From Takakia lepidozioides (lineage: Eukaryota; Plantae; Bryophyta): a stretch of 64,000 bases of DNA. This document shows positions 6,142-50,376 of this stretch, piece after piece. The DNA is taken from NCBI GenBank assembly GCA_030704615.1, contig CM060734.1, forward strand, positions 186,001-250,000, given 5' to 3'. The position numbers and the translations under genes are program-made. Position 1 is the stretch's first letter, and every line of letters begins with the position of its first letter. The notes beneath the pieces are model-generated. The model did not search any database, had not been told where the DNA came from, and saw only the letters and a program-made list of their open reading frames with translations.

Positions 6142-14726
<8,585 letters not shown>

Positions 14727-29490: not shown

Positions 29491-30829
29491 CACCTCTGTG
29501 GTGTCTTGTAGGGATCCACCGTCTCTGTGGGTCCCTCGCTTACATTGGCATCTGTCATTTGGGCACCCCTGGCCTCTTCAGCTGCCTTTTGTCTTTCCTC
29601 CTGCTAGCATTCTGTCTCGTCTGTTCTTTTGCCCTCTCTTTTTGCCCTCTCACGGGCTTTCTGTTTCTTACTAGGGCTAGCAGCAGGGAGCCCTCCAGGA
29701 CGACCACCTTTGATTGAGGCAAACTGACACCCTCGCCGCGCACTGCTTACTCCCCCCTCCGCAGCCCGTGACTGCTCTCTCGCCTGGGATTGCATGTGCT
29801 TCTTCTTTCTTTCTTCTTTTTCTTTGTGTGGGCGGGCCCTACTGCATGTGCATGAACAACCTCCATTGCCGGATCTGCTGTCCTCATGTCCTCACCCCTT
29901 CACCTGCCATGCCGCCTGCACCAACCTCCCCAATGCCTACTCTGTTGTAATCTCGTTGCAAGTCCTCCCGTCCACAACAAAAGGTTTAAGTTTGCCCTCT
30001 CGCCCCAAGTTGGGCGATTCAAACATGCGATGAGTTGGAGCTGTCGATGATACCATCAGCGTGCCGGGCTCGTCGTCACTCTGTCATTGACAAAAATCGT
30101 GAAAACCAACATCGGTGCAAAAAGCAGCATCGCAACGAGCAGCGCAACCACCATAGCAACAATCATGTAGCAAAAATGAAAACATAACAAGTTTAGGAAG
30201 TATGGAGAGCCATGCAACAACAATGAAAACAAATGCAACCATTGCCTAAGAATGACATGCACAAGCAGCCTTCTCCAGAGCTGCCGGATTTGCACACGCA
30301 TTGCAAACAATCTAAGGTTCACTCAACTATCTAAAGTTCACTCATACAGCAAAGCCAGGATGAAGATGCAAAAACAAAGCGAGGTAACAAAGCGAAAGCA
30401 AAAAATAATCGAACAAACCGAAAGCAGAAGTGGCTTGCCTGAGAGTACTCGCTTCAGTTGGCGCAGGTTGTGAGCAAGACACTGGAATCTCCTGCTGGAG
30501 CTTCAGTTTGGCCATGCGAGAGATTGGCCGTCGTCCGTAGTACAGAGCTTTCAACTTCCGCCGCGGTCTGGATGTGAGGTCTCTCTCAGGAGAGCCACGC
30601 CCTTCAGGCGGCATAAGTCCCAGCCAAAAAGATCTCCTTTTTTGGGGTACATGCCTGGAATACCATGTTAAGCCAAGTTTAGCATGAGATTTAGGGTACG
30701 TGTCCAGGAAGCCATGCGTCGCCAGCCCGAATAATAACCGACGGCCGTCGACATTTATTGCCCAACTGCGCAATTAAATGTCGGATGAAGCCCTCCATGT
30801 CGGATGAAAATCGACGTAAACAGTCCCGG

Positions 30830-33120
30830 AATTTCCAACGTAGAGGTAATTCGGAGCGCTGCACGATGGAATTCCGGCGACGGATTTCCATCCTGCAGGT
30901 AATTCGGAGCGCAGCAGGATGGATATCCGGCGCCGAATTTCCATCCGCGGAGGAAGGGCGGCGGTGGAAATTTCCCTCACGCAGGTAATTCGGAAACCCG
31001 CGGATGGAAATCCGGCGCCGAATTTCCATCCGCGGAGGTAGGGCGGCGGTGGAAATTTCCCTCACGCAGGTAATTCGCCCGCGGATGGAAATCCGGCGCC
31101 GAATTTCCATCCGCGGAGGTAGGGCGGCGCTGGAAATTTCCCTCACGCAGGTAATTCGGAAGCGCGCGGATGGAAATCCGGCGCCGAATTTCCATCCACG
31201 CAGGTAGGGCGGTGCGCCAAATTTCCCTCACGCAGGTAATTCGGAAGCCCGCGGATGGAAATCCGGCGCCGAATTTCCATCCGCGGAGGTAGGGCGGCGC
31301 TGGAAATTTCCCTCACGCAGGTAATTCGGAAGCGCGCGGATGGAAATCCGGCGCCGAATTTCCATCCGCGGAGGTAGGGCGGCGCTGGAAATTTCCCTCA
31401 CGCAGGTAATTCGGAAGCGCGCGGATGGAAATCCGGCGCCGAATTTCTATCCGCGCAGGTAGGGCGGTGCGCCAAATTTCCCTCAAGCAGGTAATTCGGC
31501 GCCGAATTTCCATCCTGCAGGTAATTCGAATCCCGGATGAATGGAAATTCGGCGCCGAATTTCCATCCAGCAGGTAAGTGGAATCTCGGATGGATGGAGA
31601 TTCGGCGCCGAATTTCCATCCAGCAGGTAAGTCGAATCCCTGCTGCATGGAAATTCGGCGCCGAATTTCCATCCAGCAGGTAAGTCCGATCGGTGCTGTA
31701 TGGATATTCGGCGCCGAATTTCCATTCGCCATGTATTTCTGCGCGTGGAATTACCTTCGTGCGAGTAATTCCCATATAAGAATTACCTTCCTGCAGGTAA
31801 TTCCCAGATGAGAATTACCTTCGTGTAGGTAATTATGGACGAGGAATTAACATCGATTGGAATTACCTGCAGGAAGGTAATTCTCATCTGAAAATTACCT
31901 GCACGAAGGTAATTCTCATCTGGGAATTACCTGCAGGAAGGTAATTCTTATATGGGAATTACCTGAACGAAGGTAATTCCTCGCGCAGAAATACATGGCG
32001 AATGGAAATTCGGCGCCGAATATCCATACGGCACCGATCGGACTTACCTGCTGGATGGAAATTCGGCGCCGAATCTCCATCCATCCGAGATTCCACTTAC
32101 CTGCTATTCCACTTCCCTGCTGGATGGAAATTCGGCGCCGAATCTCCATCCATCCGAGATTCCACTTACCTGCTGGATGGAAATTCGGCGCCGAATCTCC
32201 ATCCATCCGGGATTCCACTTACCTGCTGGATGGAAATTCGGCGCCGAATTTCCATCCGGGGGATGGTCTCTGTCGGAGAGGTGCCGCCTCTCCGCCGCTC
32301 TGTTGGATATTCGGTGCCGAATTTCCGTCCGGGGGTTGAAATATGACGGCCAGGTGCCGACCTCTCCCTTCTCCCCGACTGCATTGGAACGGCCCCGAAT
32401 TGAAATTCGGCGCCGTTTTCCCATCTGTGGAGGTTTTTATGTCGGCCAGTTTTTGGTCTGACCCCCCGACAAGACTTCCTTTGGGGGGGCCCGGATGGAA
32501 TTCGGCGCCGAATCTCCGTCCAGGGGATGTTCTCTGTCGCACACTCGCCGGCCTCTGCGCCCGAGGCGACTTCATTCGGGCGTCCCCTGTTCGATATTCG
32601 GTGCCGAATTTCCGTCCGGGGGTTGAAATGTGACGGCCAAGTGCAGGCCACTCCCCCCTCCCCGACTGCATCCGAACCGCCCCGGATGGAAATTCGGCGC
32701 CGTTTTTCCATCTGGGGATGTTTTTATGCCGTCCAGTTTTCGGCCTGACCCCCCGACACGACTCCCTTTGGGGGCCCGGATGGAAATTTGGCGCCGAATC
32801 TCCATCCAGGGGATGTTCTCTGTCGCACACACTCCGGCCTCTGTGCCCGAGTCGACTTCATCCGGGCTTCCTCTGTTGGAAATTCGGCGCCGTTTTTGCA
32901 TCCGCGGAGGTTTTTATGTCGGCCAATTTTCGACCTGACCCCCCGACAGGACTTCCTTTGGGGGGATCCGAATGGAAATTCGGCGCTGAATTTCCATCCG
33001 GGGGATGTTCTCTGTCGGACAGTGCCGGCATCTTTGCCCCAGACGACTTCATCCGTGCGGCCCCTGTTGGATATTGGGTGCCGAATTTCCATTCGGGGGT
33101 AGTAATGTGACGGCACGGTG
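30830..33120. repeat. Compound tandem arrays built on palindrome GGAAATTCGGCGCCGAATTTCC (85-bp x~7; 53-bp units on both sides of an inverted-repeat axis; ~96-bp units in a ~290-bp higher-order repeat)
   Basis: GGCGCC cores at 30929, 31014, 31095, 31180, 31265, 31350, 31435, then 31551, 31604, 31657, 31710, then ~95-96-bp spacing from 32313 to 33077. Confidence 0.95.
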
Positions 33121-33381
33121 CCGGCTTCTCCCCTTCAGCCGACATCATCCGGACGGCCCCCCACTTTCTGACTACATACCGTTGGCAGTTATTGCGCAAA
33201 GACCAGGGGCCGCATTCCGGAGACAAGGTTCATTAACACTCTGACTGTGGATTTTTGAGATAGTTGGCTCCCTGGATTTGGATCAGGCTTCGTCGCTCGG
33301 ACAAATCGGCACCGCATTCCTTCCCATCGTTGCATCCCCCTTCTACCAAGGAGCTTCCCCGCACGCCATCCTGGCAGTCTT

Positions 33382-36300
33382 GTGTGCACATCTTCCATGG
33401 CGGAAAACCCGAGCGCTACAGTGTACTGCCCTCCTCACGAGCATAGAGCTTCATTTCCGTGCAGAGGGGACATCTGCCGGGTGATGGAGAAATATCTGTG
33501 CGTTCGATACCACCTGAAACCGGGGTCGGTTTTTTTGGAGGAGGAAAGGAAGGACTCAAATGGCCTTGTTGTCGAGAGTATTGTTGTGCTCCACGATGAT
33601 TTCGGCGATGGCAGGGAATGGCGAGTTCCACCATCGGACAACGTCATATACAGGGCTGTTGGTGACTTCATTTGCCCGCCAAATGCACCTTCTATCCTGG
33701 CGCCTTCCACGAAACAATCCGCGAATCAGAGAGTGGCTACCTCAAAGAGAGAAGTCCGCAACGAAGTAAATCCAGAGCCGAACCCATCCATGAAGACGAG
33801 CGAGAACCGGGTTGTTCACAACCTATCCGACGCAGATGAGGTCATGGAAGTTCCGAGGTCGTCCTGGAGATCAGGCAAGTCCTCAATGGACGTCAGTGGA
33901 GGAGGGAGTCATATTCCCAGCACGAGCACCGCAGTTCGATCTATTCTTGAAATTCTTCGAGGGCTTCACCTGGAGGGACACCGGTCGGAGCTGGCCGGGC
34001 TGGACTACAGCAAGTTTGCAATTAAATTGGTTACATGCCTTCCCGCCGACGTCGACAGTAATATCTTCTTTGAGTTCCCTCCTCGGGCGGACTACTCGAG
34101 GGCGTCCGGAATGTTGACAGATATGGATAGAAAACATGACGGTCATCCTTGGTGCGTTACCAAAATCACCAGCATGAAGATGCTTGATGGTGTGCGGGTG
34201 CGCTACGTTGTTTGTGCGGGCGTGTTGCGGTGTTTCTCCCCAACTTGCTTCCACTTTAAATCCAGAGGTCACAAGAACGAGACCGATTGGACAGGCACAG
34301 CTCATCAACCATTTCGAGCTCAGGAGAAGGTTCCGAACTCCACATTTAAGTGTGTGCATTGCAAAGAACCACCACACTGCATGTCTGTTTGTAATGCCAA
34401 GCAGTTCTATGTGTTGCACCGTTTCCCTGACCTCACCCGAGCTTGCATACACGTTGGTTCCCATTGTCACAAATTGGCGAGGGGGAACTCGCGGGAGGTT
34501 GCCCACGATGCAGAGCAGCTCGTTCAGGAGGAGGTTAAGTTGAGACCGGGTGCCAAACCCAAACAGATACAGCTCCAAGCCGCCCATAAGATGGCATTGG
34601 CCAGAATTATGTCGGAAGACGGCTCCGATAGAGTTCCTCTCGACGAGAAGGAAATGGAGGCATTGCTGGAGTCGGTGTCCCACGTATGTTCACCGAATGT
34701 CCGAAACCACATTGTCTCATGCAAACGAAAATTGGGCGTGGCTCGGATATGCACTCCATTCTGGAGGTGAAGCGACGATGTGGATATGACTACATTCATG
34801 GAAGTAGGTTTCCAGGACAAGGGACTGAGGCAGATCGTTGTTTCGTATTGAAAATGTCCACGTGTGGACCTGGCAGTGGCGTCGAACTGGTCGACAGGAT
34901 GACGAGTGGGAACTTGTCAAACAGTTGGGTCATGTTCGACCATATCAAGCGAATTACAAATCACCAGTGGGTGACAATGGGTGCACATGTCTACGACACC
35001 CACTGCAGGATGCTAATGACAATTGCTATTTGTGAGATGAAAGGAGAGGACACACAATCGGAGATGCTTCTTTGGCAGGGAATAAACGAACAGATGGCCA
35101 AGGCGGGATTGCCCCCTCCCAATTTCCGTGGTTTCATGGCGGACAACGCACAAGCAAATTGGGCTGCCATCCGAAGGGTGTACGGGCAAGACCCCAATGT
35201 TCCCATGGAAGGCAAGGAGAGATCTTGTGGGTTCCATTTTCTGCAGAGCCTTTCGCAGTACACAACCAGGCTCGTGGCGCCAGATTTCAGAGAGGAGCAC
35301 CGTTCCATGTGCCTTGCGTGGAAGCGCGCTCCCACCTTGGATGATGCAGAGACACAGTTTGCATGCATACGGGCTTGGTGGACATCGTCAGGTGCTGTAA
35401 GGAAATCAGACGAAGGAGCAATGGTCAGTTGGCTAGCATGGTGGCATTATCGTTTCCTCCTCCAGTTCGGCGACTATATGCGGGAGGTGAGTTGCCACGA
35501 ATTCGCGTCCCGTTGGATATTATTCTTGGCCATATTTGTAACTTGCTTGTAACCTGAACATGTGCTTGTGCAGGAAATGTGTCTCGACTCCGACACCGAC
35601 ATGCCCATGACAAACATGGCCGAATCAGTGCACTCTTCCTGGCGTGCCTCCTCTGCGGCGCATCTGGTGGACATCCTCACTGCCACAACGGAGGACATTG
35701 TGAGGTCAATTATGCAGCAATGCAGGTACAACGAGTTCTTGAAAGGGAAACAGTGGGCTTGGGCCGGACAGGCAGGAAATGCTGATGCGGACTGCCTCCA
35801 GATCGAAGAATCCTCGGAAGTGGGCGGCGGCCTTGCAAGAGGGCCTTCGGGACACGCCATTGCTGCGAAGAGGCCAACATTTGGAAGGAGATGTTCATAC
35901 CCGTCCAGTGAGACAAAGACTTGACGAGGCACCTGGCGGAGAAGAGGATTCATGGCGAGCTGACAAGAATATTCGCACGCTCCCTCGTGGTCCGGTGATG
36001 TTGTCCGAGGAGGTCTCGTCGAGCACCGGAAGTCCTGCACGTTCAAGATCGCCATCTCCTTTGAGCACAGGGCGCGTGCCCCGGCAACATAACGAGCCAT
36101 CTGTAGTAGTAAAGCAATACAACATTCCCATTGTGGAGAGAAGAGTGTCGGAGTCACAGTGGAGAATTGCGAGGACATTGCCGGCATTTCGAGGGAAGTG
36201 TTGCGCCATCCGGGTGGATACGAGAGCACGCTGTGGTGAGATGATTCGGAGGAACCCACACGGTGCTGTACCTGCACCTTGTTTCAGCGGCAGATTTTTG

Positions 36301-36991
36301 ACTCCCACATTTGCTCACGCCACAACGCAGACATTTTGGTTCTGTAGGCACGACATAATGACCTGTGTATTTGGCAAGCCCAAGTACGGGATTCAGGGAA
36401 TGCCGGAGCCTCTGGGCATCTGGCCTGTTGCACCGGGTTGCAGCCTCTCTCAGAATGAGGCGGATGCTCTATCTGCAACAGGATTTCGAATGGTGCAACG
36501 CACAGACATCCCGGCCCACGCATTTCCGGTTCCTCAGACCCAGCCATTGCAGACTGCTCGGTCCATAGAGACGGATTGGACAATTCTGCACATCCCACAA
36601 TGCGATTCGGAAGAGTGAAGAGACGACACCCTCCCAACAAGTTGAATGAGACTCGGATTGCCAATGCTCTTGGGATGGCTTGCACTATTCAGAGCTCCGT
36701 GGACGTACCCCCACCCGGCCTTGGGCGTGTGTATCGGATGGCAACGGCCGGCTCGGCTGTACGCGACGATGTATACACAATTACGATTGGAGTGGAGCCG
36801 ACTTGCAACTGTACGGACTTCTCGTTGATGGAAGCAAAGAAGGGTTCGAAGTATTATCCGTGCAAGCATCTGTATACATTTACCTGAAGAGGTTAAGGAT
36901 GAACGTGACTATTGATGACTTTATTCATGCACCGGCGTTGAGCGTGAACGAGCTGCACAAACTCCTCCTTAGGGATTCCAGAAATCATTGA
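33382..36991 (+). pseudogene. Mutator-like (MULE) DDE transposase: GCM-like zinc domain, DDE core with CxxH, C-terminal SWIM; one intron; at least 4 frameshifts
   Basis: N-terminal DGHPW..CAGVLRC..CVHC..CIHVGSHCH (GCM-like). Core: VMFD (34938), MADNAQA (35142), CGFH (35226), intron 35487-35573, TNMAES (35622). SWIM CNC..CKH at 36804-36869. Frameshifts near 34730 and 35760 are absent from the second copy. Confidence 0.82.
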
Positions 36992-37139: not shown

Positions 37140-37760
37140 GCCATTTCTGGAAAAATGGCGCCGAATTTCTCTTTTTGGGGCCGAAAACTCGCTAAGTCCC
37201 AACATGCATTGGTACCTGTGTTTGGGAAAATGGCGCCGAATTTCTCTTTTTGGGGCCGAAAACTGGCTAAGTCCCAACATGCACTGGTACTGTGTCTGGA
37301 AAAATGGCGCCGAATTTCTCTTTTTTGGGCCGAAAACTGGCTAAGTCCGAACATGCACTGGAAAAATGGCGCCGAATTACCTGTCATGAGGGGACCTATA
37401 GCCGCGGAATTCGGCACCATTTTTCGCCAGAGAGACCTATTGCCGCGAAATACGTCGCCGTTTTTTCAGGTTACGGACCCTATTACCGCGAAATTCGGCG
37501 CCATATTTGCACATGTCGCTGGGAATTGGCATGAGCGGAAGACGAAATATCATGAGCACAACTGTCAAAAGTGCAATTTTCCCTTCAAGGGGCCGAATAA
37601 TATATTTGTTTTTTCTGACACATTGCATTAAATTATTGTTTTTTTATTGTTTTTTATTTTCGAAATTTGTACTTCTGCTCATGAAAACCGATTGTGTTAC
37701 TACTCTGCTCATGCCGCTCATGCCGCTCATGCCGCTCATGCTCATGAAATAGCAAACCTC
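37140..37760. repeat. Subterminal palindrome array (74-75-bp units) and terminal (CTCATGCCG)n/TIR region
   Basis: GGCGCC cores at 37157, 37232, 37306, 37368. The segment 37380-37760 is an inverted homolog of 59181-59540. Confidence 0.85.
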
Positions 37761-37990
37761 CTGTAAGCAGTCAGCTGAGTAAGAAAAGAATCCCAGTCCA
37801 TGGGCCTGCAAAATAGGAACATGCAAGGGAGTATGAGCCTTGTGCCCATACAACAATTCAAAGGGAGTGAGGCGAGTGCTAGCATGCACAGAGGTCCTAT
37901 AAGCAAAAATTAGGATAAGCAGCATGATATCCCACTCATCTGTCAAGGCACCATTCTTTTCCAGAAGCTTACACATCGTTTTGTTGAACG
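37761..37990 (-). mobile_element. Gypsy-type integrase core fragment (upstream half of the target site)
   Basis: WD..L..LIFAYRTSVHASTRLTPFELLYG, ending ...ADCLQ at the TSD. Confidence 0.8.
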
Positions 37991-38689
37991 ATTTTTATAC
38001 ACCCATCCCTTAGCCAATCTTGGTGGGTACTCTAGATAGGAGGTATTGGAATACTCTAAGTATTCATGTTGTTCAGAATCGGTAGACATGACTTGTTGCG
38101 GATGGTATCATGGCGGATCAATGAGGGTTTATACTTCTGGCTAGGACAAGGCTTCATGACGTCAGTGAACTTGGGTATCCTTTACGTAGATAGGTTGGTT
38201 CTCCTTAATGAAGATAGTTCATGTTTCTGTGTAAGGCTCTTCACTGGCTTCTGTAGCTATCAATCTCTACTTAGGTATTCAATAATGCGGGTGTTTATAT
38301 ATCAAGTACATTCCTAAGTATGTGGGATCTCAACACCCGGATGTTGAGATCTTTCCTAACAATCATTCTCATTACTTACGCATTCACATTACAGGCTTAA
38401 AGACACAAGTATGGATTCTGAATAAGCATCATCTTTATCAGCTCATAGCAATGAATACAAGGTTCTTTATCCCTCATCACGCTCTGTCGAAGTGCGTCCT
38501 ACTCTGGAACAGACGCGTAAACTCTTACATGCAGTGCCTGCTGCCCATCCGCCCATGCGATGGCCAGGCGTCGCCGCCTGGCCTCGGCGCCAGGTGGCGA
38601 CCTGCGGGGTTGGCGTCGCACGTTCAGCGCCGCGCGGGGTGTGGGGGCGCAGCTGGCGTCGCCAAACCCCCCCATTTGCTGTAGTGATT

Positions 38690-39771
38690 TTGGTTCATGC
38701 CTCCTACATATTGCCAAGGGGATGTGGTGTGTGCGGATGAACGACACAACGGTCTTCGCTCGCTTGATAAGTTGTTTCACCTACTGTTCTTTTCCCCAAT
38801 CTTTCAAAATGAGGTCAAGGATATGAGCAGCACAGCCTTGATAGTACATATGGGGATATCGTGCCAATAACATGTCTGCAATGTTTCTCATGTTAGCGGC
38901 ATTGTCTGTGCATATTTGCACGATTCTATCACTTCCGACCTGTTCGATGAAGGTCCGTCAATAGCTGACATTGATAACGTCAATCTTTCTTCTCGCCGTT
39001 AGTGTCTACCGATCCTAAGAATTGTTCCCCAGCTGGACATACGAGCATGACATTGAACAATGATCTGTTTGTAATAGAACTCCAACCATCGGCACATATA
39101 GTATATTTTCTGAGAGACTCGCTCGTCGTATCGTTGACATTTTGGGTAAGCTTTGTCATGACGTCTTCTAGCAATCATGTGCGGAGATTGTGATAAGAAA
39201 AAGGCACGTACGTGGATTTGGACTCCGAGGTTGCTCTAACTGCAGAAACAAATGCCGGAAGCCTTGCCACATTAAACGGTATGTTAGCCTCGAAGAAAAA
39301 CTACGTCCATTTTTTATCCAATTGCCTTTTCGCAGACAAGTTGAGGCCTTCCTGCATGGATTGCTGCCGTAATCCTCTACTTCGTTAAAGTGTAAGGGTA
39401 CAAAGAGGTGTTAAAGCAGGTGTTGCTTCGGCACAACCCACTTGTCCAAGGACACCTGAAGCCTCACAAGAGTCCCCTTAGGTACTGATCGGGGCATCCT
39501 GACGGGAAGATGAAGTGTTCTGCTCTGAGGTCGTGTCAAGGTCCAGAGACATTGGAATAATATTGCCTCCACACTGGGCAAAGTGGGTTTTTACCCGCAT
39601 AGATGCTTTAAGGCATAAGCCCATCCCGACGACCTTCCCACATTTATAGCCGAGGCGATGCAACAGCCTATCCTTACAATAAGAAAACTTCAGTCCACAT
39701 AGGTTGCACTCAACACTGCCAGTGTTCGGGATTACCCTATACCAAGGGCTCCATTCCTCCCTCATCTTCAT
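38690..39771 (-). pseudogene. hAT transposase remnant (BED finger + DUF659-type region)
   Basis: W...VECNLC...RLLHRLG (BED), TICADGWSS..N..L, VQICTDNAANM and CAAHILDLILKDWGK. Confidence 0.85.
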
Positions 39772-40179
39772 CCAATATTCACTCCTCTAGTGATGTAAGC
39801 AACAAAAAACAGTGACTTGTATATGAACCTGTGAATGTAGAGTGCAATGCGACAGCCCAACACTTTTACACCAACCTAAGTAGGTCGATGCACCTTATAG
39901 TGTTGAGCTTATACACAATATGCTGAAGTGACTTTAGTGGAAGCCACAACAGCAAAAGGTGCGCACCTTCCTCTTGGGCTATACTTTCGTTCAATGGAAG
40001 AGAACATCCATCGTAACCTCAAGTGTTTGTGCCAAAAAAAATGAGGAGCTTGGTGACCCTGGTCCCTTATATATGTTGCAGGAAGGATAAAAGTAAAATG
40101 AAAGTGAAATGAAAAAATGACCGACCAATAGCGCCCACCCGAAAAATGCGGTACAACCATATTTGTTATAGTTTTAAAA

Positions 40180-41050: not shown

Positions 41051-41379
41051 TGTCGGCAACGTGACTGCTTAAATGGCAATGTTTTACCTAGTTGTTTTTT
41101 TACTAGAATATTCTCGGAACCTGACGTGACGGAGGTCTCGTCAGCGTCAGGTCTAACGTGACCTGACGCTGACTGATGTCACTGATGCTAATAACCGGGG
41201 TTTAAAGAGAGAGAGAAAAAACTCCGGCCAAAGCCGGCGTAACTAAGAGCCTCTTCGCCTTACGGCTACTGCCCCTTTCGGGGATGGGCCCTATTTTTGC
41301 TATCCTCTGCCGACACTGGGGCCAACATGGTCAGCATGCTGGGCCTGGGTCGACCTCGTCCTTCTGGGACGGGGACTGC

Positions 41380-44300
41380 AGAGTTTAAAGAATTTGAAGA
41401 GGAGAAGATGAAATTGGGGGTCAAGTGCTTGGAGGATTGCATTTGGGATCAGGTCAGGTCCAGGGGTTTTGGATTTGGATAGGGCTTTTAGGCATGAGTT
41501 ATACATGTTAATTGTAAAGAGGTCATGGATGTGATCAGAGGGGGAGCCTCGTCGGTCTAGTGTGAAACCGTCTAGGTCATGCCACGGATAGTGCTTGACT
41601 TTACACGTGCTGTTTTGGTTATGATGGTTTGGGTGTAGACAGTTAGTGGTAGTGGGCATGTATGAGGCTGCAGCTTGGATCCAGATCTCGTTCTTGATGT
41701 CAACGGGTTTAGTTTATAAGTGGCCAAGCCTATGCTTGAGGCGGTCAATGGGTGGGTTTAGTGCAGGATTGAAGATGGCTTTGTGAGCTTTTTTGGGATG
41801 ATCATGTAGTAGCTGATTGAAAGAAGCAACAATTTTTTTGTGATTGAAAACCAAAAACCTTGAGCTAGAGTGGGTTCAAGGAACTTATGAAAAGACAGTT
41901 TGTGCCCCTCAACGCGTCCTGGCTCGCCCGGGACAAGATGATGAACTTGAAACAAATTGATGACATTCGGGGATATGTGTTCAGGCTTTCAATGTGCTAT
42001 TGCTCGAAGTCGCGGATATGGCAGAGCCAGAAATGGTCTTCAACTTTGTGGCGGGATTGGCCCCATAGGCCAGACAGAAGTTGGAGGAAAAGCCACCGAA
42101 GACTTTGAACGAGGCAATTCCCGTAGCTTTTTGTTTGGTACTGATTATGTAGGCTGTTTTTTGGGATTCTCTGCCCAGTTTGGATAGGGCAACAATCCAG
42201 GTAAGGATGGTGGGTGGGTCTTTGGGGGAGGGGGGGCATGAGGGCACGACAGGCAGAGAAGGTGTTGAGGCTGGTGATGCGGGGGTCTGACCTCTAGTTA
42301 TTGTGAAGTGAGGGTAGTGACAAGTAGGGTACGATAGTGAGGGCCCGTTGAACGGTGTGATAAATGTTGAGGTGAGTTCCAAGCACGTTTTTGTGATCTA
42401 GTAAGGTAACCACCATTTTGTTTGGAACGGGTGGTTTGAGGAATGACAGGGGGGGCAGAACATGTGGCAGTGACGCTTTTTGTCATTTCTTGTATTAATG
42501 ATGCTAGTGTGTGCTCTGCATCAAACCAAGTGGCCTCGGGAGAGTGCGATAGGTTAGTGTCAGAGAGGATGTGCGAGAGTTTAAGCGTGAGGATCGAGAC
42601 AGTTGGATGAAAGTGATTTTGGAATGCAACAATGTTGCATTGTGGTAGTGGGGAGAGGATCCGGGGCTGAGGGGTGGGGGTTGGGTGTCGCGGCCCTTTG
42701 CCTTGAGGGCAGGGGGTCGGGACACAAGAGGGGCTGCCCCTGTGGTGGGGGCAGTGGCAGCGATAGGTATGGGGGGCTGAAGCACCCTTGAGTGCCCAAG
42801 GCACTCAGGAGGCAGAGGCGCTCACTAGGTGGAGCCCCGCACACCGGGTTGCGGTGGGGGTGGCTCCACAAGGGGTGGTGGTAGCTTAGCGGGACTTAGT
42901 GGGGTGGCATAGGACTCACCCTGGGGCGGAGACCTCGTGGTGGGAGTCGTGGGGAGTCTTGGGACTCATCACGGTCCATAGGGGCCGTGGTGGGTGGGCC
43001 AAGACTCACCGCGACTCATCACCGGGAGTCGAGGGTGTTCGTGGTGGTTCGCCATAAAATGGCATGGTTGTTTGTGAAACCCCCGTGGACAGCTACAGAA
43101 GTATATATAGGGAGTAGTAACCCCGAGAACGGTGCAAGCCCGTTGGTGACCAAAAACTAGTGAGTAAGCGAGCGAGCCGGAAAGCGACCAAAGAGTGGGG
43201 AGCTGTTCCGGACTGCCAACTACCAAAGGGAATTCCGCTGGTTCCAAATCGTTGGAGGGTTCTTTGGGAGATCAAAGGGGGACCGTTATGCCCCGGTGAG
43301 CAGCCGGAGCTCCAAGTTGGTCCGGCGGCCAGGTTGGGAGTTAGGCGCGCGCATCAAGCGAGTAACTATGACTTGAGGGGAGAGCTTACCGAAGTGAGGT
43401 GCGCGACATTGGGGCTAGAGGGACCGGTCGTATGGGGATAAGGGATGGGGGGAGGGAGATGGATACCGGGTAGTGATCAGAGTTACATAAGCTGTCGGTG
43501 TGGATGTGGTGGCTCATGAGATACGTCGGGATTTGGGTGTGTGTCCGGAGGTAGAAACCGTCAATAAAGCTTAATGATGAGTAGTGGAGCCCACTTTGTC
43601 GCACGAGTAGTGGTGGTGGGCTGGGATGTAGGAGAATTGATGTTGTTGTATAAATTTATCCCAATCATGGTCGAGTGGGATAGGAGTTTTGTGTAGGCCA
43701 TTGAATGTGTGTCCAAGTAGGGCAATGTCACAGCTAAAGTCACCGGCGAGTATGTAGTGGAAGTGTTGATGTTCAGGGTGGGAGACAGTGTTAGAGATAG
43801 TGTGTAGTATTTCCGGTATCAAAGCTAGGTCTTCAGTGTGCGAGGGCATATATAGGTGGATTAAGGTGATGGGGTCGAGGGCGGGTAGGGGGATTTGGAT
43901 AATTTGTAAATAAGAACGGAGGGGGATAGGTACGGATATTTTTAAGTGTAGAGCTGGGGGAGTGATGTGTTCAGAGGATACCGAGTGCCATGCCACCATG
44001 AGAGGGGCTATATGGGGCAGAGCGATGTTTAAGGCATTGTGATGCAGTTAGGGGGGTGCCGTATAGGAGGTAGTAGTCTGGCAGGAGTTTGTTGATGTAT
44101 GAACTGGTGGAATTGTTAGTGTGTAGTTTGGTTTCTTGTAAGAGAATAATGTGAGGGGCCATGGAATCTGTGAGGAGGTGAATTAAACTTTGGATGCTTG
44201 AGGCTAGAGAGCCCACGTTCCAAGTAGTGATGGTAAGAGTGTGAGAGCATATGTCGGGGGGGTTAGGGGGATGACTGGGTGAGGTGTCCGGTGTGGGAGT

Positions 44301-44738
44301 TTGAGGTTGGGTTGGGGGTGGAGATGGTTGCGGTGGCACAGGAGCAGGTGGAGGTTGGTAAGCGAGAAGGGGGTAAGGATAGTAAGGGTAGCCGAGAGAA
44401 CCCTTTCAGAGAGAAATGGGAATTTATTGGTGATGCTTTGGTGGTCTTGGTCCGTGTTGGTCGTGAGGGTAGCAAGGTGGTCACCGAGCTTCTTGTGCAA
44501 AATGCTCGGTTGTGATTGTAGCAGATTGAGCGATGTGAGTAGGTGTGATAAGCAGTGAGTTGGGGCTAGGTAGTTGTTAGGATATGGGGGAAGAGATTGT
44601 AAATCATGTAAAGTAGAAATGATTTGAGAGTCTGGTTGTGTGGTTAAGTAGGCGTCACATTCTTTGGGTAGTGGGGAGATGATGACGATGAGAGAAGAGA
44701 AGATGTTGTGCTGGGTAGGTGTTGAGTTTTAGAATAGC
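41380..44738 (-). mobile_element. Decayed Dualen-like LINE: APE endonuclease through the start of RT
   Basis: APE motifs LTITTWNV, IILLQETK, IHLYMPSH, ILAGDF, FIDGF and SDHYPV. RT domain 0 (KTPGPDLIPN) at ~41445-41470, then truncated. Confidence 0.85.
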
Positions 44739-44800
44739 CTTGGAGTAGCACACCGGTTAGACCATCGTGGGCAAGAGCAGCCCCCGCAATTACCCATACG

Positions 44801-47800
44801 GTGGAGAGTGGAGGAGAGGAAAGAACACCTGAAAGAGCACGGATTGTGCAAGTTCGAGGTGAAGCCAGGGAGAGGGCAGTAGAGACGACGAGAGTGCTGG
44901 AGGTGGTTTCGCAGGTGGCTGACCCTGTTGAGGAGGACGACATGGAGGTTTTTGACCAGGATGACATCCTCCCGGACATCCCCAGGCCCCAAACCCGGAG
45001 CATACAGGCTGGATTTGGCGGTCCTGGTGGGCTGCCGGAAAACCCCTCTGCAGCAGACGTCATGTCTGAGGCGGATATGAAGTTGGCCGCTGCCAAGATG
45101 TTGGAGGCAACCCACAGCAACATTGGCAGGGTGCTGGGGGGCATGGTGTACCCGGCCAAGCTTCGAATTCCCCTTTGCCGCTTGGTGTCATTGCAGGTGG
45201 TGAGACCTGCCCTCCCAGGCGATATCGACAAGCTGAAATTCTCTTTCCGGGATGGATATCGAATGGGGTCTGCCGCCTTTTACGTTTCCATTGAGAACGA
45301 CCACGGAGCTTCCCGTGCCCACACTTCCGATGAGGTGGACAAATGGGGTCCCCATTGGCAAACGCGAAATGAGGAGTTCGAGAGATCGATTGCTAGTGAT
45401 CCTCTTTTCCAGCACATGTCCGGTAAGATGTTCTACGTGTGGGACGGCAATCATCGCCTCCTGGCATGGATGGAGCACATTGCCCAAGCCCACCCCAACG
45501 ATCTCGATTGGCATTTCGCCGTCGACTGTGTTGTGCTGAAGGTTGCGGGGCCCAAAGATCGCAGTCTTCTCAAAGCTGCAATGGCCGACATCAACTCGTA
45601 AGCTACAACCCCTCTCGCTTTTGGACTTTGAATTTGGAAGTCATTTCATTGCGAATCCTCATATATGATGAAAATTCCCATTTCAGTATTGTTTGATGGA
45701 AATGTGGCACTGCAGGGTGACTGAGAATGCCTTCATTGCCACCAACTTGTCCCATATGCTCTTCCAGTGAAGGATGTCGGGAAGCAGGGGGTGCAAGAGT
45801 TTGCCAATTCCCTCAGTGCCGACCTCCTGCGCAAGTCGGAGGCAAAGGCAGACAGAACCTGGTATAGGCTGAGCGTCGACGCCATGGTGGACTACATATT
45901 TCGGGTAAAGCTCCTGACAATTTTGTTGAGCTAATCTGTCTCTCCTCCCCCAATAGAAGAAATTGTGTTGAGCAAGATCTCTAATCTTATGTGCGCATTC
46001 TTGACAGACGAAAATACAGCAGGATTTGGCACATGCGCGGAGGTTCTACATGGAGTCAGAGGAGAAGAATCCAACCCTCCCGGAACTCGAATCGTATGTC
46101 AAAGCTGCGGAGGTGAGGGCCCGCATAAAGTACAAGTCGCGGATGGTAAAGTACGTGGCCATAGCTGATCCCGCCCTTGGTGCCGACTTTCTGGTGGAGG
46201 TGGGGAAGCACTACTCTCACGCTCTGAAGCCCACGATGACATTGGAGAAGCTCCATCGTCTAGCCACATCCTGTGTGGATGCAACAGAAAAGGTGATACA
46301 TTCTTAACAAATTGTGGTGGCAACAACTCCTTTTTGTGGTGTTTGGCGCTTACGAATATGCTGGGTGGTTGGACAGACCCGGTGGCTCCAAATCTGGAAT
46401 GGTTCCCAAAGTACCAGGGACATGTGGAGCTTCCCCAAACCGGACAAACTCTCTGACCCCACATTCGACATGTGGATGAACCGCATGACATGGTGGTTTC
46501 AGGTACTTCCCCACGCTTCGTTTGGGGCTTCTACTCTAGTAGGGGGTGGATTCATTGTATTTTTTGAGGAAAGCGATCTGATGGACAATCTCCACAGGTG
46601 ACGACGAATGCGCAAGAGCAGCTGGACACACAAGCACATCAGTTCAAGATGGAGATATCTCCTGCAGCAGAGAGCCTACGTGACTATGTGACGAGGTACT
46701 TTCTGCTCTACAAAACCAACCTATTCTTTCGGGAGATAGCAGATGCTCGCCGGAGCCACGAGTTCACCGACCAGCCGAATGCGGACAAAGCAGCAATGCG
46801 CCTTCTGTACAGGTACATACGCGCTGCCTTTCTTTCAAGTCCTGGCATTTCAGGATGTTAAAGGCCTCAAGTGGTGTTAGGGAAAATGGCGCCGAATTTC
46901 CAGTCAGGGCTCCGAAAATGGCTAAGTCCCTAGACTGGCTGGCCCGGAACTGGAAATTCGGCGCCATTTTCCAGTTCCAGGCCCTATTGCCGTTCAGGGA
47001 CTTAGCCATTTTCGGCCTAAGTCCCTAGACTGGCTGGCCCTGAAGTGGAAATTCGGCGCCATATTCCAGTTTTAGGCCCTATTGCCGTTCAGGGACTTAG
47101 CCATTTTCGGCCTAAGTCCCTAGTGTGGCTGGCCCGCAACTGGAAATTCGGCGCCGTTTTCCAGTTCTAGGCCCTATTGCCGTCCAGGGACTTAGCCATT
47201 TTCGGGCTAAGTCCCTAGACTGGCTGGCCCTGAACTGGAAATTCGGCGCCCTTTTCCAGTTCCAGGCCGTATTGCCGTTCAGGGACTTAGCCATTTTCGG
47301 GCTAAGTCCCTAGACTGGCTGGCCCTGAAGTGGAAATTCGGCGCCATATTCCAGTTCCAGGCCCTATTGCCGTCCAGGGACTTAGCCATTTTCGGTCTAA
47401 GTCCCTACGGTGGCTGGCCAGGAACTGGAAATTCGGCGCCGTTTTCCAGTTCTAGGCCCTATTGCCGTCCAGGGACTTAGCCATTTTCGGGCTAAGTCCC
47501 TAGGGTGGCTGGCCCGGAACTGGAAATTCGGCGCCGTTTTCCAGTTCTAGGCCCTATTGCCGTCCAGGGACTTAGCCATTTTCGGGCTAAGTCCCTAGAC
47601 TGGCTGGCTCTGAACTGGAAATTCGGCGCCATTTTCCAGTTCCAGGCCGTATTGCCGTTCAGGGACTTAGCCATTTTCGGGCTAAGTCCCTAGACTGGGT
47701 GGCCCTGAAGTGGAAATTCGGCGCCATATTCCAGTTGTAGGCCCTATTGCCGTTCAGGGACTTAGCCATTTTCGGACCTCATTGTGTTTTTCATGAATGC

Positions 47801-50155
47801 AGGTACTGTAAGTTCTCCCTTTTGGAGAAAGGTCATCTGTCTTTCGAGCCACCATTCTTCCTGGCATGGAGGAACCCTGGGGCTGACTCCATGTACACTG
47901 ACGATATTGTGAAGGAGTGGCATCTGGAACATTTGCGTGATTGCCCTTGGTATGTGGACCTTCCGCCCGGCTCGCTCGACCCATCCGAGTTTCAATTGAA
48001 GCTGGATGCTGAATTCCGACGAAACCAGGCTCCGCTGCCTCCGTTGGGTGCAAAAGAGGCAAAAGCGCTTGCGAACTCCAGGAAAGCGGCAGAGCTTGCT
48101 CAGGCAGGAATTCAGGAGAAATTGCATGAGAAGAGTAAAGGTCAAAGGAAAAGGACAAGGAAACAGGTGACTGCAGTAACACCCAAAAAGAAGAAAACCA
48201 TCGGGGCATCGGAGGAGGCGCAGGAGGGGACCCAAGAGAGTGACTCCGACGCTGATTTTGTTCAAGGTCCTGCGACTGCTGTTGCTCCTACCCAGTCACC
48301 GGTCGTCCGGGTTCCCAAGTCAGTTCGGAGTGGGACTGGCTCTGCCAAGAAGTTGGCATTTGAGGGCGAGCCTACACGGCGGTATTCGGCGGTGACGTTT
48401 ACGCACAGGCCAAAGCTAGAACCTCCAACCATCATCCAATGCGTCAATGAGAGCTTCCTTGACGCTCTCGCTGCCAGGGCGAAGAAGGTGGCACACAACA
48501 AGTCTCTGGCGGAGCAGAAGGGGAAAGCCAAGAAGAGGGCTGCCGGTACAGAGCCTAAAGACACCCCTGGTTTTGAAGCCATGATGGAATTCTTCACGGC
48601 TGTGAGCACGAATTGCAAGAGCACTCGGGGGGGGGGGTTGAGGTGGAGAGAGCTTGCGACATGATTCTCCTCGACATTCCAGATGGGGAGCTGCTGGAGG
48701 GCCTGGATGGTGTGCCCACCTGGAACAGGTTTACTGAGGACTACTGGAAAGCCGGGTTTGGGCTGGCGGGGATGCTTCTGGATGACGGTGGATGTGTGGT
48801 TGTCCTTGCCACGAGAGGGAAGACCACAGAGAATGCGGTGGCAAGGTGGACACCGAAAAGTGTCACCCCGGTCCTCCTCAGAAAATGGTTCTGCATCAGT
48901 ACGCAGGGGTTGCGAACAGAGGGCCAAAGTGTAAGTTATCAATCTATTGCATTCACTTCATATTGTGGTGTATGTTAAGTAGACCCTGGAATTGATCCCT
49001 TCTTTGTTGGATGTGCAGACATTGGTGTTTGAGGCATATTGCTTTGTGAAGAGAGGGTCTACGTTCAAATTCCGCAACGACGGTCGTCTTGTTGATGCCG
49101 CTGTGGACCCTGTAACCTACGATGTCCTCTACAACTATGTGCCCCACTCTAGTATGCCGAAGGACACAAAGACAGGCAAACCGTGGCGGTACAGCCGGAC
49201 CCGGAGCCCTGCTTTCATCCAAACCCTCATGGAGACGTGCTCGGATGTCCAAGGGCGGATTCTGGACCTCACATGCGGCACGGGTAAGCCTTCACGTGCT
49301 CAGTTTGTCCCCTGGCCCCATTGCAATTGCATGCCGCAAGCTATTAACCGCCCGCTTTGTTCCTCAGGTGCTTCAATGTGGGCAGGGACATTGTCCGACA
49401 GGCATGTGTTCGCCTTCGAGCCAGATACTGCCCTCCACAACTCGGAACTTGCAGCGGCTGAACGTCTGCCGAAAGAGGAAGAGGCATCCTCGGAGGATGA
49501 GGAAAAATCCGAGAAGGAGCAGGGGGAGGAAGTTGGGATCGAGGCCGAGGAGCCCCCGGTTTACGAGTGAGTGGTGGCATTGTAAGTTGCCTCCAGATTT
49601 TGTGAGGCACCTCCCTCCGCTCTCTTATTTCATTGAAAACCCTTTCTGGTTGTGCTGGTATTGACATTCTTCAAGTGGATTTGTTCTTACTGTAGGATGC
49701 CAAGTACTGCCGGAGGGACGTCTACACCGGAGTTCATGGGCAGGAGGAACGTGCCTTTTTTTGCCAGGGGGGATTTCATGCCTAGTCCAGAAAGGGAGTA
49801 CATCCTTCCTACTTATGCTGCCCGGCTTGCTTCGGTGTCCATTAGGAGGTGTTCCGAACGTAGTCGTGTACAGCAGATTTTAGACGAGGCAAGCCTCAAG
49901 AAAATGAAGATGAGGGAGGAGGCAGCAGCTATTAGAGCCCGTCGGGCTCGTAGATTTGTGTTGGATTCTGCTGAGGAAAGTGGGGGAGAAGACGCAGAAG
50001 ATTCCCAGGAGGTGAGGTGGACAGTCCCCCAAGGAGAGGACGGGATTTTTGAGAGGCATAGTGGAACTGATGCATCACAGAGCTCGGAGGATGAGGGGGA
50101 TGAGGGGGATGAGGAAGAAGGTGGGGCAAGTTCCTCGGAGGGTGTAGGAGAGTAG
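44801..50155 (+). pseudogene. Spliced gene: ParB/Srx-like domain + beta-class N4C/N6A DNA methyltransferase-like domain, ~1200 aa, two frameshifts, 5' end displaced
   Basis: GT-AG exons in phase: ..45597, 45716-45904, 46008-46292, 46377-46502, 46598-46812, 47803-48930, 49019-49283, 49368-49566, 49696-50155. FYVWDGNHRLLAW at 45443. CDMILLDIPD (motif IV-like, 48673) precedes RSPAFIQTLMETCS..GRILDLTCGTGASMWAG...RHVFAFEPD (motifs X-I-II). Frameshifts at ~45767 and in the poly-G at 48627-48637. Confidence 0.75.
46880..47775. repeat. 95-bp tandem array (x9 plus a partial unit) filling an intron of the ParB-MTase gene
   Basis: GGAAATTCGGCGCC at 46952, 47047, 47142, 47237, 47332, 47427, 47522, 47617, 47712. 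Each unit also has the hairpin GGGACTTAGCC..GGCTAAGTCCC. Confidence 0.95.
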
Positions 50156-50376
50156 TGCCCATTCCGGCTATGACAGTTAGAACACACTTGTATAGACGTG
50201 GCTTGCCACAAAATTTGCAATAAAATGTTGCATTTCAAGTCCACTGGTGCCACATTCCAACTTCACATGACCCTATTTCCGTGCCTCCTAACCCTATTTC
50301 CGTGGACTCACAATGGTCTGCTCATGCTTTTTTTTTTTCCGCTCATGCTCATGCCGCTCATGAAATAGCAGCCCCC

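Follow-up and report, generated by a model that had tools for sequence, protein, structure and literature searches.

Within the 64-kb window, i.e., the whole stretch of DNA analysed here, two pieces separated by 7 kb make up one 13,904-bp cut-and-paste transposon, which landed in an old gypsy-type retrotransposon, namely within its integrase gene, duplicating 9 bp, and was later split by a 15.2-kb inversion. By its duplication and its terminal inverted repeats (TIRs), this element is Mutator-like. In its original order, it comprised a TIR, 74-bp subterminal repeats, an outward-facing transposase gene, 2.3 kb of palindrome arrays, an outward-facing cargo gene of ParB/methyltransferase-like (ParB/MTase-like) type and the second TIR, with a further palindrome array inside an intron of the cargo gene. 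The design, hitherto described in algae alone, is here represented in a land plant. Taken as a whole, i.e., with the insertion of a Mutator-like element, the 15.2-kb inversion and the roles inferred at family level for transposase and cargo, this reading is regarded as very probable. A first-pass annotation of the sequence had proposed the same layout, namely a rearranged element of about 14 kb ordered TIR, transposase, arrays, ParB/MTase-like gene and TIR, and contigs from other copies of the family now back it.

Termini, target site and inversion

Read on the plus strand, both termini are right ends, the one, ...GCTCATGAAATAGCAAACCTC, having its last base at 37760 and the other, ...GCTCATGAAATAGCAGCCCCC, at 50376, exactly where the first-pass annotation had put them. 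They can be aligned over about 38 bp, with 18 of 21 positions identical at the tip and CATGAGC repeats thereafter, and their 14-mer core, GCTATTTCATGAGC, occurs exactly three times within the window, for an expectation of 0.5 matches per window with up to two mismatches. On the 13,904-bp element, these ends form terminal inverted repeats, as in Mutator/MULE transposons, namely a left TIR with GAGGTTTGCTATTTCATGAGC and CATGAGC repeats (37723..37760, minus strand, now in inverted orientation) and a right TIR reading inward as GGGGGCTGCTATTTCATGAGC.. (50339..50376, plus strand). Each terminus is abutted by the 9-mer TGCTTACAG, reverse-complemented at 37761..37769 (minus strand) and forward at 50377..50385 (plus strand); these mirrored copies are its only two occurrences in 64 kb, and the chance of the same 9-mer abutting both termini is about 4e-6. 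The shared 9-mer, which had been noticed beforehand, could be either a target-site duplication (TSD) or a part of the termini; since another sequence (..GGCACACCT) flanks the third family copy, which begins with GAGGTTAGCTATTTCATGAGC at 59181, the 9-mer is target DNA lying outside the terminus. Its length agrees with the duplications of Mutator/MULE elements, i.e., about 9 bp within a range of 8-11 bp.

The flanks of the two termini complement each other to a single integrase reading frame, both halves of which read from the 9-mer positions, as expected from the earlier proposal of an integrase split across the insertion site. From 37994 to 37761, the minus strand translates to ..FAYRTSVHASTRLTPFELLYGHKAHTPL..SADCLQ, and from 50377 the plus strand reads CLQVRVA and then, after a 1-nt frame change, LLEIAKHNIQIAQVVQAKHYNMRVV..FRIGQTVCV. 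From its recognised motifs, we take the interrupted frame to be a Ty3/gypsy integrase, with a degenerate 5' half identified at motif level only (37770..38150, minus strand) and a 3' half (50386..50767, plus strand); the short integrase pieces had no match in Pfam, and a search of PDB sequences with the integrase piece returned nothing significant.

The junction between the two pieces is documented by other copies of the family. In four public runs (three studies), contigs match the window from 29494 onward and extend leftward past this position with ..GATGGTCTAACCGGTGTGCTACTGCCT, an exact and, in the window, unique match to 44744-44766 on the minus strand, and the family letters AGGC at the joint 29494/44744 give an open reading frame (ORF) that continues in frame into the ParB exon. 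The pieces were concatenated solely for reading frames and composition across the two junctions. As for the third copy (59181..64000, plus strand), it keeps its left end, is internally deleted or rearranged and leaves the window; it matches 37723-37379 at 59200-59550 (85%), 36035-34449 at 59673-61262 (93.5%) and the arrays of 33158-32228 at 61263-62584. Further on, it carries 46767-46835 in reverse complement (63348-63416) and, 15 bp away, a match to 30532-30637 (63431-63541), so that equivalents of these two stretches of the window element lie close together in this copy. Given such a third copy in the same window and the great abundance of the family, whose summed depth in public-run contigs exceeds that of single-copy sequence about a thousandfold, the two pieces might be viewed as truncated remains of two different neighbouring copies. 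This is highly improbable, however, considering the mirrored 9-mer at both termini with its very low chance expectation, the flanks complementing each other in one integrase frame, and the fact that the pieces end exactly on either side of a single internal junction of the family and sum to 13,904 bp with no overlap and no gap beyond 4 bp. The two pieces being halves of one element, this copy gives structural proof for the family, as it exhibits the two ends, the complete order of parts and a 9-bp duplication whose coding target can still be recognised.

The inversion has its breakpoints at 29490-29494, where the start proposed earlier (29491) was within 3 bp of the true position, and at 44739-44744, one of which interrupts the cargo gene within its first coding exon, the other having hit the 5' region of a neighbouring LINE. 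The inverted segment contains the transposase half, the upstream half of the integrase, a hAT-like transposase remnant (38500..39786, minus strand; DUF659 E 4e-8, CAAHILDL motif) and most of the LINE. Left of junction 1 lies the C-rich 5' part of this LINE-like element in sense orientation (28896..29490, plus strand), the translation of which contains a 2A-like DIHPNPGP motif; its continuation, placed right of junction 2 (41303..44739, minus strand), encodes an apurinic-type endonuclease (Exo_endo_phos E 5.6e-5; GPDLIPNAIL) and the start of a reverse transcriptase. Both sides of this LINE junction share an unusual base composition, with C at about 37% and G at 11-13%, that of the left flank (A.28, C.37, G.11, T.24) being near-identical to that of 43000-44739 read in sense. 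Among the contigs listed, none bridges 29490|29494 (span 29459-29502), the Logan contigs ending at 29459, and the region is rich in repeats; on these grounds, the inversion could be an assembly artefact and the element really uninterrupted, with the LINE, the hAT remnant and the integrase half upstream in forward orientation. Assembly inversions, though, normally arise between inverted repeats, and self-BLAST of the window found no sequence common to the two breakpoints, while the left junction adjoins single-copy sequence (read depth about 38-40 in run X1), making such an artefact improbable. Whether the inversion is real or an artefact, the reconstruction of the element stands. For neither the gypsy element nor the LINE did a second copy turn up that would display an empty site or an unbroken LINE. 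Insertion of the LINE between 29494 and 44744, with breakpoints elsewhere, was also considered and rejected, the left flank having the LINE 5' end in sense without reverse transcriptase and other copies joining 29494 directly to 44744. The later inversion illustrates how such elements decay.

Transposase and cargo protein

The transposase persists as a pseudogene directed toward the 37760 terminus (33259..36988, plus strand). Its translation exhibits a Cys/His-rich N-terminal region, a DDE-like core (MFDH .. MADNAQANW .. CGFH .. TNMAESVH, i.e., the pattern D..D..CxxH..TNxAES) and a SWIM finger (CNCTDF..CKH) with CxC..CxH spacing. In Pfam, the finger is borderline (PF04434, 19.5 bits for a cut-off of 19.6, E 7e-4), the core is unmatched in window pieces and Riccia ORFs alike, including by MULE (PF10551) and Transposase_mut, and the best match of the transposase is a weak one to the ZSWIM1-3 RNaseH-like domain (E 0.18); across the 30-odd ORF pieces searched, only SWIM (borderline), DUF659, Exo_endo_phos and a hAT dimerisation domain were found. 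The nearest ESM-Atlas clusters are nearly all MULE, with values of 0.78-0.82 that count as a lead only according to the tool, and searches for homologous proteins returned no match for the 503-aa N-terminal piece and two short ENA fragments for the DDE piece. Of the Mutator hallmarks put forward in the first-pass annotation, the 9-bp TSD and the TIRs stand, and the transposase core is seen as a motif pattern with a SWIM finger just below its cut-off. Compared with the third copy and Riccia, the gene is frameshifted near 34700, and it contains an in-frame stop at 35550 as well as further frame changes; as the cargo gene is in addition split, with an in-frame stop, this copy is dead. At the level of the family, the DDE/SWIM transposase would bind the TIR and the CATGAGC subterminal repeats and move the element.

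The cargo gene contains introns and is distributed over the two halves. Its upstream region and the 5' part of its first coding exon, delineated from other-copy contigs, are inverted and cut off at 29494..30817 (minus strand), and the rest of this exon, with the ParB/Srx-like domain (IPLCRLV .. VWDGNHRLLAW), follows at 44744..45598 (plus strand). Next come middle exons (..KYVAIADPALGADF.., ..VTRYFLLYKT..; 46005..46858, plus strand), recognised from their similarity to the Riccia protein P0160 (blastp E 0.002 over residues 433-452, and by eye only around residue 605), and then the 3' exons, including the FLAWRNPGADSMY region (47850..50152, plus strand). Searches and structure predictions were run on unjoined ORF pieces, or on the Riccia homolog, rather than on a joined or spliced window protein.

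For the N-terminal domain of the cargo protein, structural modelling supports a ParB/Srx fold. The AlphaFold2 model of the domain has a pLDDT of 91, and the 40 best Foldseek matches in the PDB all correspond to this fold, among them PadC, sulfiredoxin (Srx), Noc, ParB and KorB, with probabilities of mostly 0.9-1.0, yet with a best E of 7e-3 and TM of 0.4-0.5, which is weak in absolute terms. At the sequence level, Pfam ParB_N did not match the window pieces at E<=1, and a profile of 38 homologs of the domain found no ParB among PDB sequences. Over these 38 homologs, G, N, H and R are (nearly) invariant in a nucleotide-binding GxxRxxA-type motif (GNHRLLA in the window), a pattern that represents the CTP-binding box. 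The ParB exon has homologs in 479 representative clusters at E<=1e-3, and no algal protein was identified among 10 source-checked members of the 150 best representatives.

Less firmly than the ParB/Srx fold, a beta-class amino-methyltransferase fold is supported for the 3' exons, which successively encode a motif IV-like LLDIPDG (48577-48975), motif I ILDLTCGTG (48983-49567) and a C-terminal FVLDSAEE tail (49637-50152). Motif IV precedes motif I, as does motif X, in the circular order of the beta class, the motif IV-like segment lying about 150 aa upstream of ..FVQTLLENFT..GDIVIDFAGGWGAT in Riccia and of ..FIQTLMET..GRILDLTCGTG in the window. With a Riccia homolog folded instead of the window domain, itself split over two reading-frame pieces, the 28 best Foldseek matches were all beta-class N6A/N4C DNA methyltransferases (E 4e-7 to 2e-4) for a model with a pLDDT of only 51.6. 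The MTase profile had M1.HpyAVI/DpnA as best but non-significant match among PDB sequences. Pfam found nothing in the window's own MTase pieces and scored three Riccia paralogs at 23.7, 24.8 and 26.2 bits for N6_N4_Mtase, below the curated cut-off of 26.7 and over the C-terminal 50 residues of the model only; one Riccia paralog has a precomputed PF01555 match.

The question then arises whether the cargo protein would be an active N6-adenine/N4-cytosine DNA methyltransferase methylating the arrays of the element. Such an activity, in line with the first-pass proposal of a protein that would chemically mark its own element, would fit with the beta-class fold and the preserved motif I, with one fern homolog keeping an aromatic loop residue (DVPFG) and with the annotation of algal counterparts as N4C/N6A methyltransferases (PMC12477816). 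It appears rather unlikely, however, as the canonical catalytic motif (D/N/S)PP(Y/F/W) is absent from all homologs inspected, in addition to the Pfam scores falling below the curated cut-off. Motif IV takes the form D[LMIVF]P[TSDFI]G in every homolog inspected, i.e., DIPDG in the window, DLPTG, DMPSG and DMPTG in Riccia, and DVPFG and DFPIG in Adiantum. Because DPPY is replaced by this conserved DxPxG, the cargo protein is more likely to act as a sequence-specific binder or clamp, which would shield or regulate the element, than as a canonical methylase.

Palindrome arrays and relatives in Riccia and Adiantum

Out of 65 GGCGCC sites in the window, 61 are inside the three element pieces, when base composition would predict about 12 for the whole window. 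In the split element, palindromes are repeated in (i) the central arrays (30818..33160), with units of 85, 53, 32 and 96 bp and the core palindrome TGGAAATTCGGCGCCGAATTTCCA, which form one large inverted repeat centred near 31864, (ii) the subterminal 74-bp repeats with a degenerate GGCGCC palindrome (37146..37361), and (iii) nine 95-bp units with a GGCGCC palindrome (46920..47775), at an intron position of the cargo gene where they separate exons that are contiguous in the Riccia protein.

The same layout is found at locus L001 of the liverwort Riccia sorocarpa. There, an array of the palindrome ATTCCGGCGAGsCTCGCCGGAAT (8504-9372) lies between a minus-strand homolog of the transposase (tblastn E 1e-42 and 1e-26) and a plus-strand ParB/MTase-like gene of 1207 aa, and subterminal palindromes of a second type are present on both sides. 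A candidate TIR pair is located at 2138-2170 / 15990-16022, for which no convincing duplication was found. The palindromes have similar half-sites, ATTC(C)GGCG, and different centres, namely GGCGCC in the window and CGAGsCTCG in Riccia. A homologous-protein search with the MTase region of Riccia P0160 returned Riccia paralogs only. Adiantum proteins possess both the ParB and the motif IV regions. The ParB-plus-methylase-like gene and the arrays have stayed with this high-copy transposon of seed-free land plants since before the divergence of liverworts and ferns.

These arrays could also be transposase-binding or promoter elements, like the subterminal repeats of other TIR transposons, in which case the ParB/MTase-like protein would not recognise them and would do another job or be a long-carried passenger. 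Along this line, degenerate palindromes occur in the 74-bp subterminal repeats beside the TIR, the second Riccia palindrome type is subterminal at both ends, the central array sits between divergent genes as expected of a bidirectional promoter, and no ParB-type helix-turn-helix DNA-binding domain was identified in the cargo protein. Against it, the Riccia cargo gene keeps its position and orientation beside the arrays, the ParB-plus-methylase-like fusion is also present in Adiantum ferns, and a palindrome array has entered one intron of the cargo gene. In algae, moreover, ParB cargo adjoins tandem inverted repeats with three transposase superfamilies (bioRxiv 10.1101/2025.02.11.637652; PMC12477816), the repeats being linked more closely to the ParB gene than to any one type of transposase. 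All in all, a role confined to transposase or promoter is possible but doubtful. Rather, at family level, the cargo protein would act on the element's own palindrome arrays via its ParB-like nucleotide-binding and methyltransferase-derived domains.

Comparable designs in algae, plants and phages

Close published counterparts come from algae. In the brown alga Ectocarpus, Sola1-1_Ec32 (PMC12477816) is a large TIR transposon with an accessory gene on the strand opposite the transposase, encoding a protein of about 1100 aa with ParB-like and N4C/N6A DNA methyltransferase domains, which the authors propose to bind and modify its own element. Likeness to the present element is by domain makeup, i.e., a gene for ParB plus methyltransferase(-like) domains opposite the transposase inside TIRs; however, the transposase is there Sola1, in a brown alga, and here Mutator-like, in a land plant, and the passage describing Sola1-1_Ec32 reports no palindrome array, in contrast with the arrays seen here. 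In the red alga Bostrychia, Plavaka (EnSpm/CACTA) elements carry PAG2/PAG3 accessory genes, for which Chondrus crispus reportedly has homologs in both Plavaka and Mutator elements; a ParB-domain accessory protein is encoded beside tandem inverted-repeat arrays and a further accessory gene encodes an N6-adenine methylase-like domain, self-binding and self-modification being proposed (bioRxiv 10.1101/2025.02.11.637652). As in Plavaka, the ParB-domain gene here adjoins tandem inverted-repeat arrays within the element; there, though, ParB and the methylase are encoded by separate genes, the former with a 2OG-dependent oxygenase as fusion partner and the latter with a SET domain, whereas here ParB and a methylase-like domain with altered catalytic loop belong to one protein. 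The window reconstruction and Riccia L001 both have a ParB accessory gene with a DNA-modifying(-like) domain inside (in L001, candidate) TIRs and opposite the transposase, and tandem inverted-repeat arrays adjoin the ParB gene.

In Arabidopsis, VANDAL MULEs encode the anti-silencing accessory protein VANC, which is thought to act on short motifs amplified in their own sequence and has neither a ParB nor a methyltransferase domain; the likeness, a Mutator-like element with a self-targeting accessory protein, is a functional analogy only. As for phage and plasmid ParB-methyltransferase fusions (for phage ParB-terminase loci, see Iyer et al., PMC4738411), the cargo protein similarly has a ParB/Srx-like N-terminal domain (GxxRxxA-type, GNHRLLA) joined to a putative beta-class fold, but is encoded by a eukaryotic intron-containing gene, comprises about 1200 aa, of which about 600 aa form a middle region, and has lost DPPY. 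The candidate sites are palindromic as in ParB/parS systems, unlike which no ParB helix-turn-helix was identified.

For land plants, no description of such an element was found in the literature, and to this extent the earlier view that the combination is not a described family holds; it does not extend to algae, since ParB-plus-N4/N6-methyltransferase accessory genes facing away from the transposase strand, as well as ParB-domain ones adjoining tandem inverted repeats, are already published for transposons of brown and red algae (PMC12477816; bioRxiv 10.1101/2025.02.11.637652). Tentatively, Mutator-like transposons of land plants may carry a self-recognition module in which the nucleotide-gated ParB-like and remodelled methyltransferase domains of one protein load on element-specific palindrome arrays and keep the chromatin of the element open or mark it. 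If true, this would amount to a counter-silencing system encoded by transposons and derived from bacteria or phages, the site specificity of which would co-evolve with the arrays. Bryophytes are tractable systems in which to test the part played by bacterial-type DNA-recognition modules in the escape of transposons from silencing.

Termini, target site and reconstruction of a 13,904-bp element

The two termini reported by the first-pass annotation are real, i.e., ...GCTCATGAAATAGCAAACCTC stops at 37760 and ...GCTCATGAAATAGCAGCCCCC at 50376, both appearing as "right ends" on the + strand. They align over about 38 bp, with a tip identical at 18/21 positions followed by CATGAGC repeats, and the terminal 14-mer core has exactly three occurrences in the 64 kb, of which the third, at 59188, is oppositely oriented. 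The 9-mer TGCTTACAG is present only twice within the window, each time abutting a terminus, as the reverse complement at one and in forward orientation at the other. A third copy of the family (59181 to the end of the window) starts with GAGGTTAGCTATTTCATGAGC and is preceded by ..GGCACACCT, which differs from this 9-mer; as such, the 9-mer corresponds to target sequence and not to a part of the termini, as had been considered. The two flanks can be read as halves of a single integrase-like frame, namely ..FAYRTSVHASTRLTPFELLYGHKAHTPL..SADCLQ on the minus strand and, on the + strand, CLQVRVA, a one-base frame change and LLEIAKHNIQIAQVVQAKHYNMRVV..FRIGQTVCV. We take these halves to be the stretch that follows the catalytic core in plant Ty3/gypsy integrases, an identity for which Pfam gave no confirmation on these short, decayed pieces. 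The initial observation of termini, shared 9-mer and split integrase frame is thus confirmed as a whole.

Public-read contigs from four runs (three studies, a plant metagenome among them) were placed on 28300-30900. In 4/4 runs, contigs from other copies match the window rightward from 29494, their leftward extension being ..CGCGATGGTCTAACCGGTGTGCTACTGCCT, of which 23 letters of consensus have an exact and unique match in the window at 44744-44766 on the minus strand. Consequently, the reverse complement of the sequence starting at 29494, then AGGC, then the sequence from 44744 onward are contiguous in other copies, and the breakpoints are bounded to 29490-29494 and 44739-44744. The proposal that the 29491 side was once contiguous with about 44.7 kb, and with it the structural interpretation, is therefore supported, the left (29494-37760) and right (44744-50376) pieces forming one element of 8267 + 4 + 5633 = 13,904 bp. 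With the family AGGC inserted, a single reading frame crosses the joint (..EERQKAAEEARGAQMTDANVSEGPTETVDPYKTPQ before it, RGSSTPVRPSW..MEVFDQDD.. after it) and continues into a ParB-like domain, so that the break interrupts the first coding exon of the cargo gene, i.e., the ParB/Srx-like and methyltransferase-like gene opposite the transposase. The third copy provides an independent tie: it resembles the transposase end at 85-93.5% identity, the arrays come next, and the reverse complement of 46767-46835 lies just 15 bp from the match to 30532-30637. This internally deleted relative brings together sequences of both halves, which therefore belong to one family. At 29721, 29748, 29946 and 30056, the letter of the window differs from that of all or almost all family contigs of the runs examined; these look like private mutations of the window copy, fitting an old, decaying insertion.

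The other junction joins the C-rich LINE-like 5' part at 28896-29490 (+), ending at 29490, to the reverse complement of the sequence ending at 44739. The former exhibits a 2A-like DIHPNPGP motif (LTLLKCRDIHPNPGP, 29230-29276, +), placed 5' of the endonuclease in a C-rich LINE-like element, and then a His/Pro/Thr-rich stretch; the latter contains similar sequence running into an apurinic-type LINE endonuclease (44405-43574, minus strand; Exo_endo_phos, E 5.6e-5), after which a reverse transcriptase begins. With C 37% and G 11-13%, the base composition is unusual and near-identical on both sides. All of this is accounted for by a simple two-break inversion of 15.2 kb, with one breakpoint that would fall in the 5' region of the LINE and the other inside the transposon, and the C-rich LINE-like element is now split by it. 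That the inverted arrangement would instead be an assembly error is very unlikely: among the contigs listed from the public runs none crosses the junction itself, but the breakpoints bear no inverted repeat able to cause misassembly. The element was inserted by cut-and-paste with a 9-bp duplication and was later split by the inversion, its original order being left TIR, 74-bp subterminal repeats, outward transposase gene, 2.3 kb of arrays, about 0.8 kb of upstream sequence, outward cargo gene and right TIR. At 28822-29082 (about 260 bp), summed contig depth in two runs is about a thousand times that of single-copy flanks, this segment being a very abundant short repeat within otherwise unique sequence.

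The transposase and the cargo protein

The transposase has a Cys/His-rich N-terminal region and the pattern D (MFDH) .. D (MADNAQANW) .. CxxH (CGFH) .. TNMAESVH. Its SWIM finger scores 19.5 bits (cut-off 19.6), the catalytic core was not recognised by Pfam, and in a language-model search the nearest clusters were MULEs, with scores only at lead level; the 9-bp duplication and the TIRs are as in the Mutator superfamily, of which the transposase is a candidate member. Relative to the third copy and Riccia, the window gene carries a frameshift near 34.7 kb, and there is an in-frame stop at 35550; further frame changes may be introns. A second, more diverged SWIM-type C-terminus at 26358-26810 (+) (..FLDCTCPDF..GKHLYYIFLRMMY..FIHQATL..LLQRD) resembles 36750-36988 by eye and is probably a remnant of a related Mutator-like element.

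At E<=1e-3, the first cargo exon retrieves 479 representative relatives, including sequences from the liverwort Riccia sorocarpa, Adiantum ferns and many metagenome fragments. The ParB-like domain was modelled by AlphaFold2 with a pLDDT of 91 (38-sequence alignment), and the best 40 Foldseek matches in PDB were all of ParB/Srx fold (40/40; e.g., PadC, sulfiredoxin, Noc, ParB, KorB), with high probabilities, modest E-values and modest TM-scores. Among homologs of this domain GNHRLxAW is nearly invariant, and it fits the ParB GxxRxxA nucleotide-binding pattern.

The C-terminal part aligns with P0160, a 1207-aa ParB/methyltransferase-like protein of Riccia, over a motif IV-like segment, motif X/I and an acidic tail. 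Three lines, each weak alone, point to a predicted beta-class amino-methyltransferase fold: Pfam N6_N4_Mtase scores 23.7-26.2 bits on the Riccia paralogs, just below cut-off; the best match of the family profile against PDB is M1.HpyAVI/DpnA (E 0.45); and the best 28 matches of a low-confidence model (pLDDT 51.6) are all beta-class N6A/N4C DNA methyltransferases. In every homolog inspected, D-x-P-x-G stands in place of the catalytic DPPY-type motif, i.e., DIPDG in the window, DLPTG/DMPSG in Riccia and DVPFG/DFPIG in Adiantum. Because this replacement is conserved, it suggests a retained function, of which canonical methyl transfer is probably not part; that the cargo protein genuinely methylates appears unlikely.

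Palindrome arrays and relatives in Riccia and Adiantum

The arrays consist of 85-, 53-, 32- and 96-bp units around two palindromes, TGGAAATTCGGCGCCGAATTTCCA and GAATTACCT..AGGTAATTC, and together make up a large inverted repeat whose centre lies near 31864, with a near-perfect palindrome at 31622-32105 (213-nt arms, 94% complementary, 58 nt apart). In the third copy, a block adjoining the arrays has the reverse of its orientation in the main copy, suggesting that the arrays promote internal inversions. Of the GGCGCC sites in the window, 61/65 lie within the three element pieces. A further array (9 x 95 bp, 46920-47775) occupies an intron position, as the exons on either side of it directly follow one another in the Riccia protein (..RYYVWHLQSEKAP followed by ACFLLWRNP..).

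Elsewhere, an AT-rich array at 40160-41050 (period about 49-51 bp), whose units contain a different perfect-type palindrome, AGCGACCGCCAATATGGCGGTCGCT, sits between a hAT remnant and a LINE and may be part of another transposon family. A hAT transposase distinct from the remnant at 38500-39786 is represented by its C-terminal portion at 52963-53748 (minus strand; Dimer_Tnp_hAT, E 3e-8), and 55030-55300 comprises tandem 10-bp units (CTATCACAGC / CGATCACAGT / GTGACACAGC).

The two genes lie together between the ends not only in the window element, as the first-pass annotation had proposed, but also in further copies and in a second species. A Riccia sorocarpa locus (L001) repeats the architecture of the window element, with a minus-strand transposase homolog (tblastn E 1e-42 and 1e-26), a palindrome array at 8504-9372 (ATTCCGGCGAGsCTCGCCGGAAT, unlike the palindrome of the window), a plus-strand ParB/methyltransferase-like gene, subterminal palindromes of a second type on both sides, and a candidate TIR pair 13.9 kb apart. 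The palindromes at 8504-9372 in Riccia and 30818-33160 in the window are different, yet share a similar half-site (ATTCCGGCG vs ATTCGGCG) with different spacing about the centre, which could reflect conserved recognition or chance. Adiantum proteins contain ParB and motif-IV regions together.

Algal counterparts and a possible role

Comparable elements are known in algae. Ectocarpus Sola1-1_Ec32 encodes a 1104-aa ParB-like and N4C/N6A methyltransferase protein opposite the transposase (PMC12477816). In Bostrychia, Plavaka elements carry a ParB-plus-oxygenase gene adjoining tandem inverted repeats, the N6-adenine methylase/SET domains being encoded by a separate gene; Plavaka and Mutator elements of Chondrus are reported to contain homologs (bioRxiv 10.1101/2025.02.11.637652). 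According to Iyer et al., eukaryotic ParB-linked adenine methylases go back to phage ParB-terminase loci (PMC4738411). As full-text literature searches yielded no account of elements of this type from bryophytes or ferns, the occurrence in land plants is rated new, the kind itself being already known from algae.

In the proposed mechanism, the transposase would act on the TIR and CATGAGC repeats, and the cargo protein on the palindrome arrays, because the arrays vary by species while the gene stays adjoining, because one array has colonised an intron, and because algal ParB-domain cargo adjoins tandem inverted repeats alongside other transposase types. A role of the cargo protein in self-recognition or anti-silencing is about as probable as the arrays instead serving the transposase or promoters, each being less likely than not.
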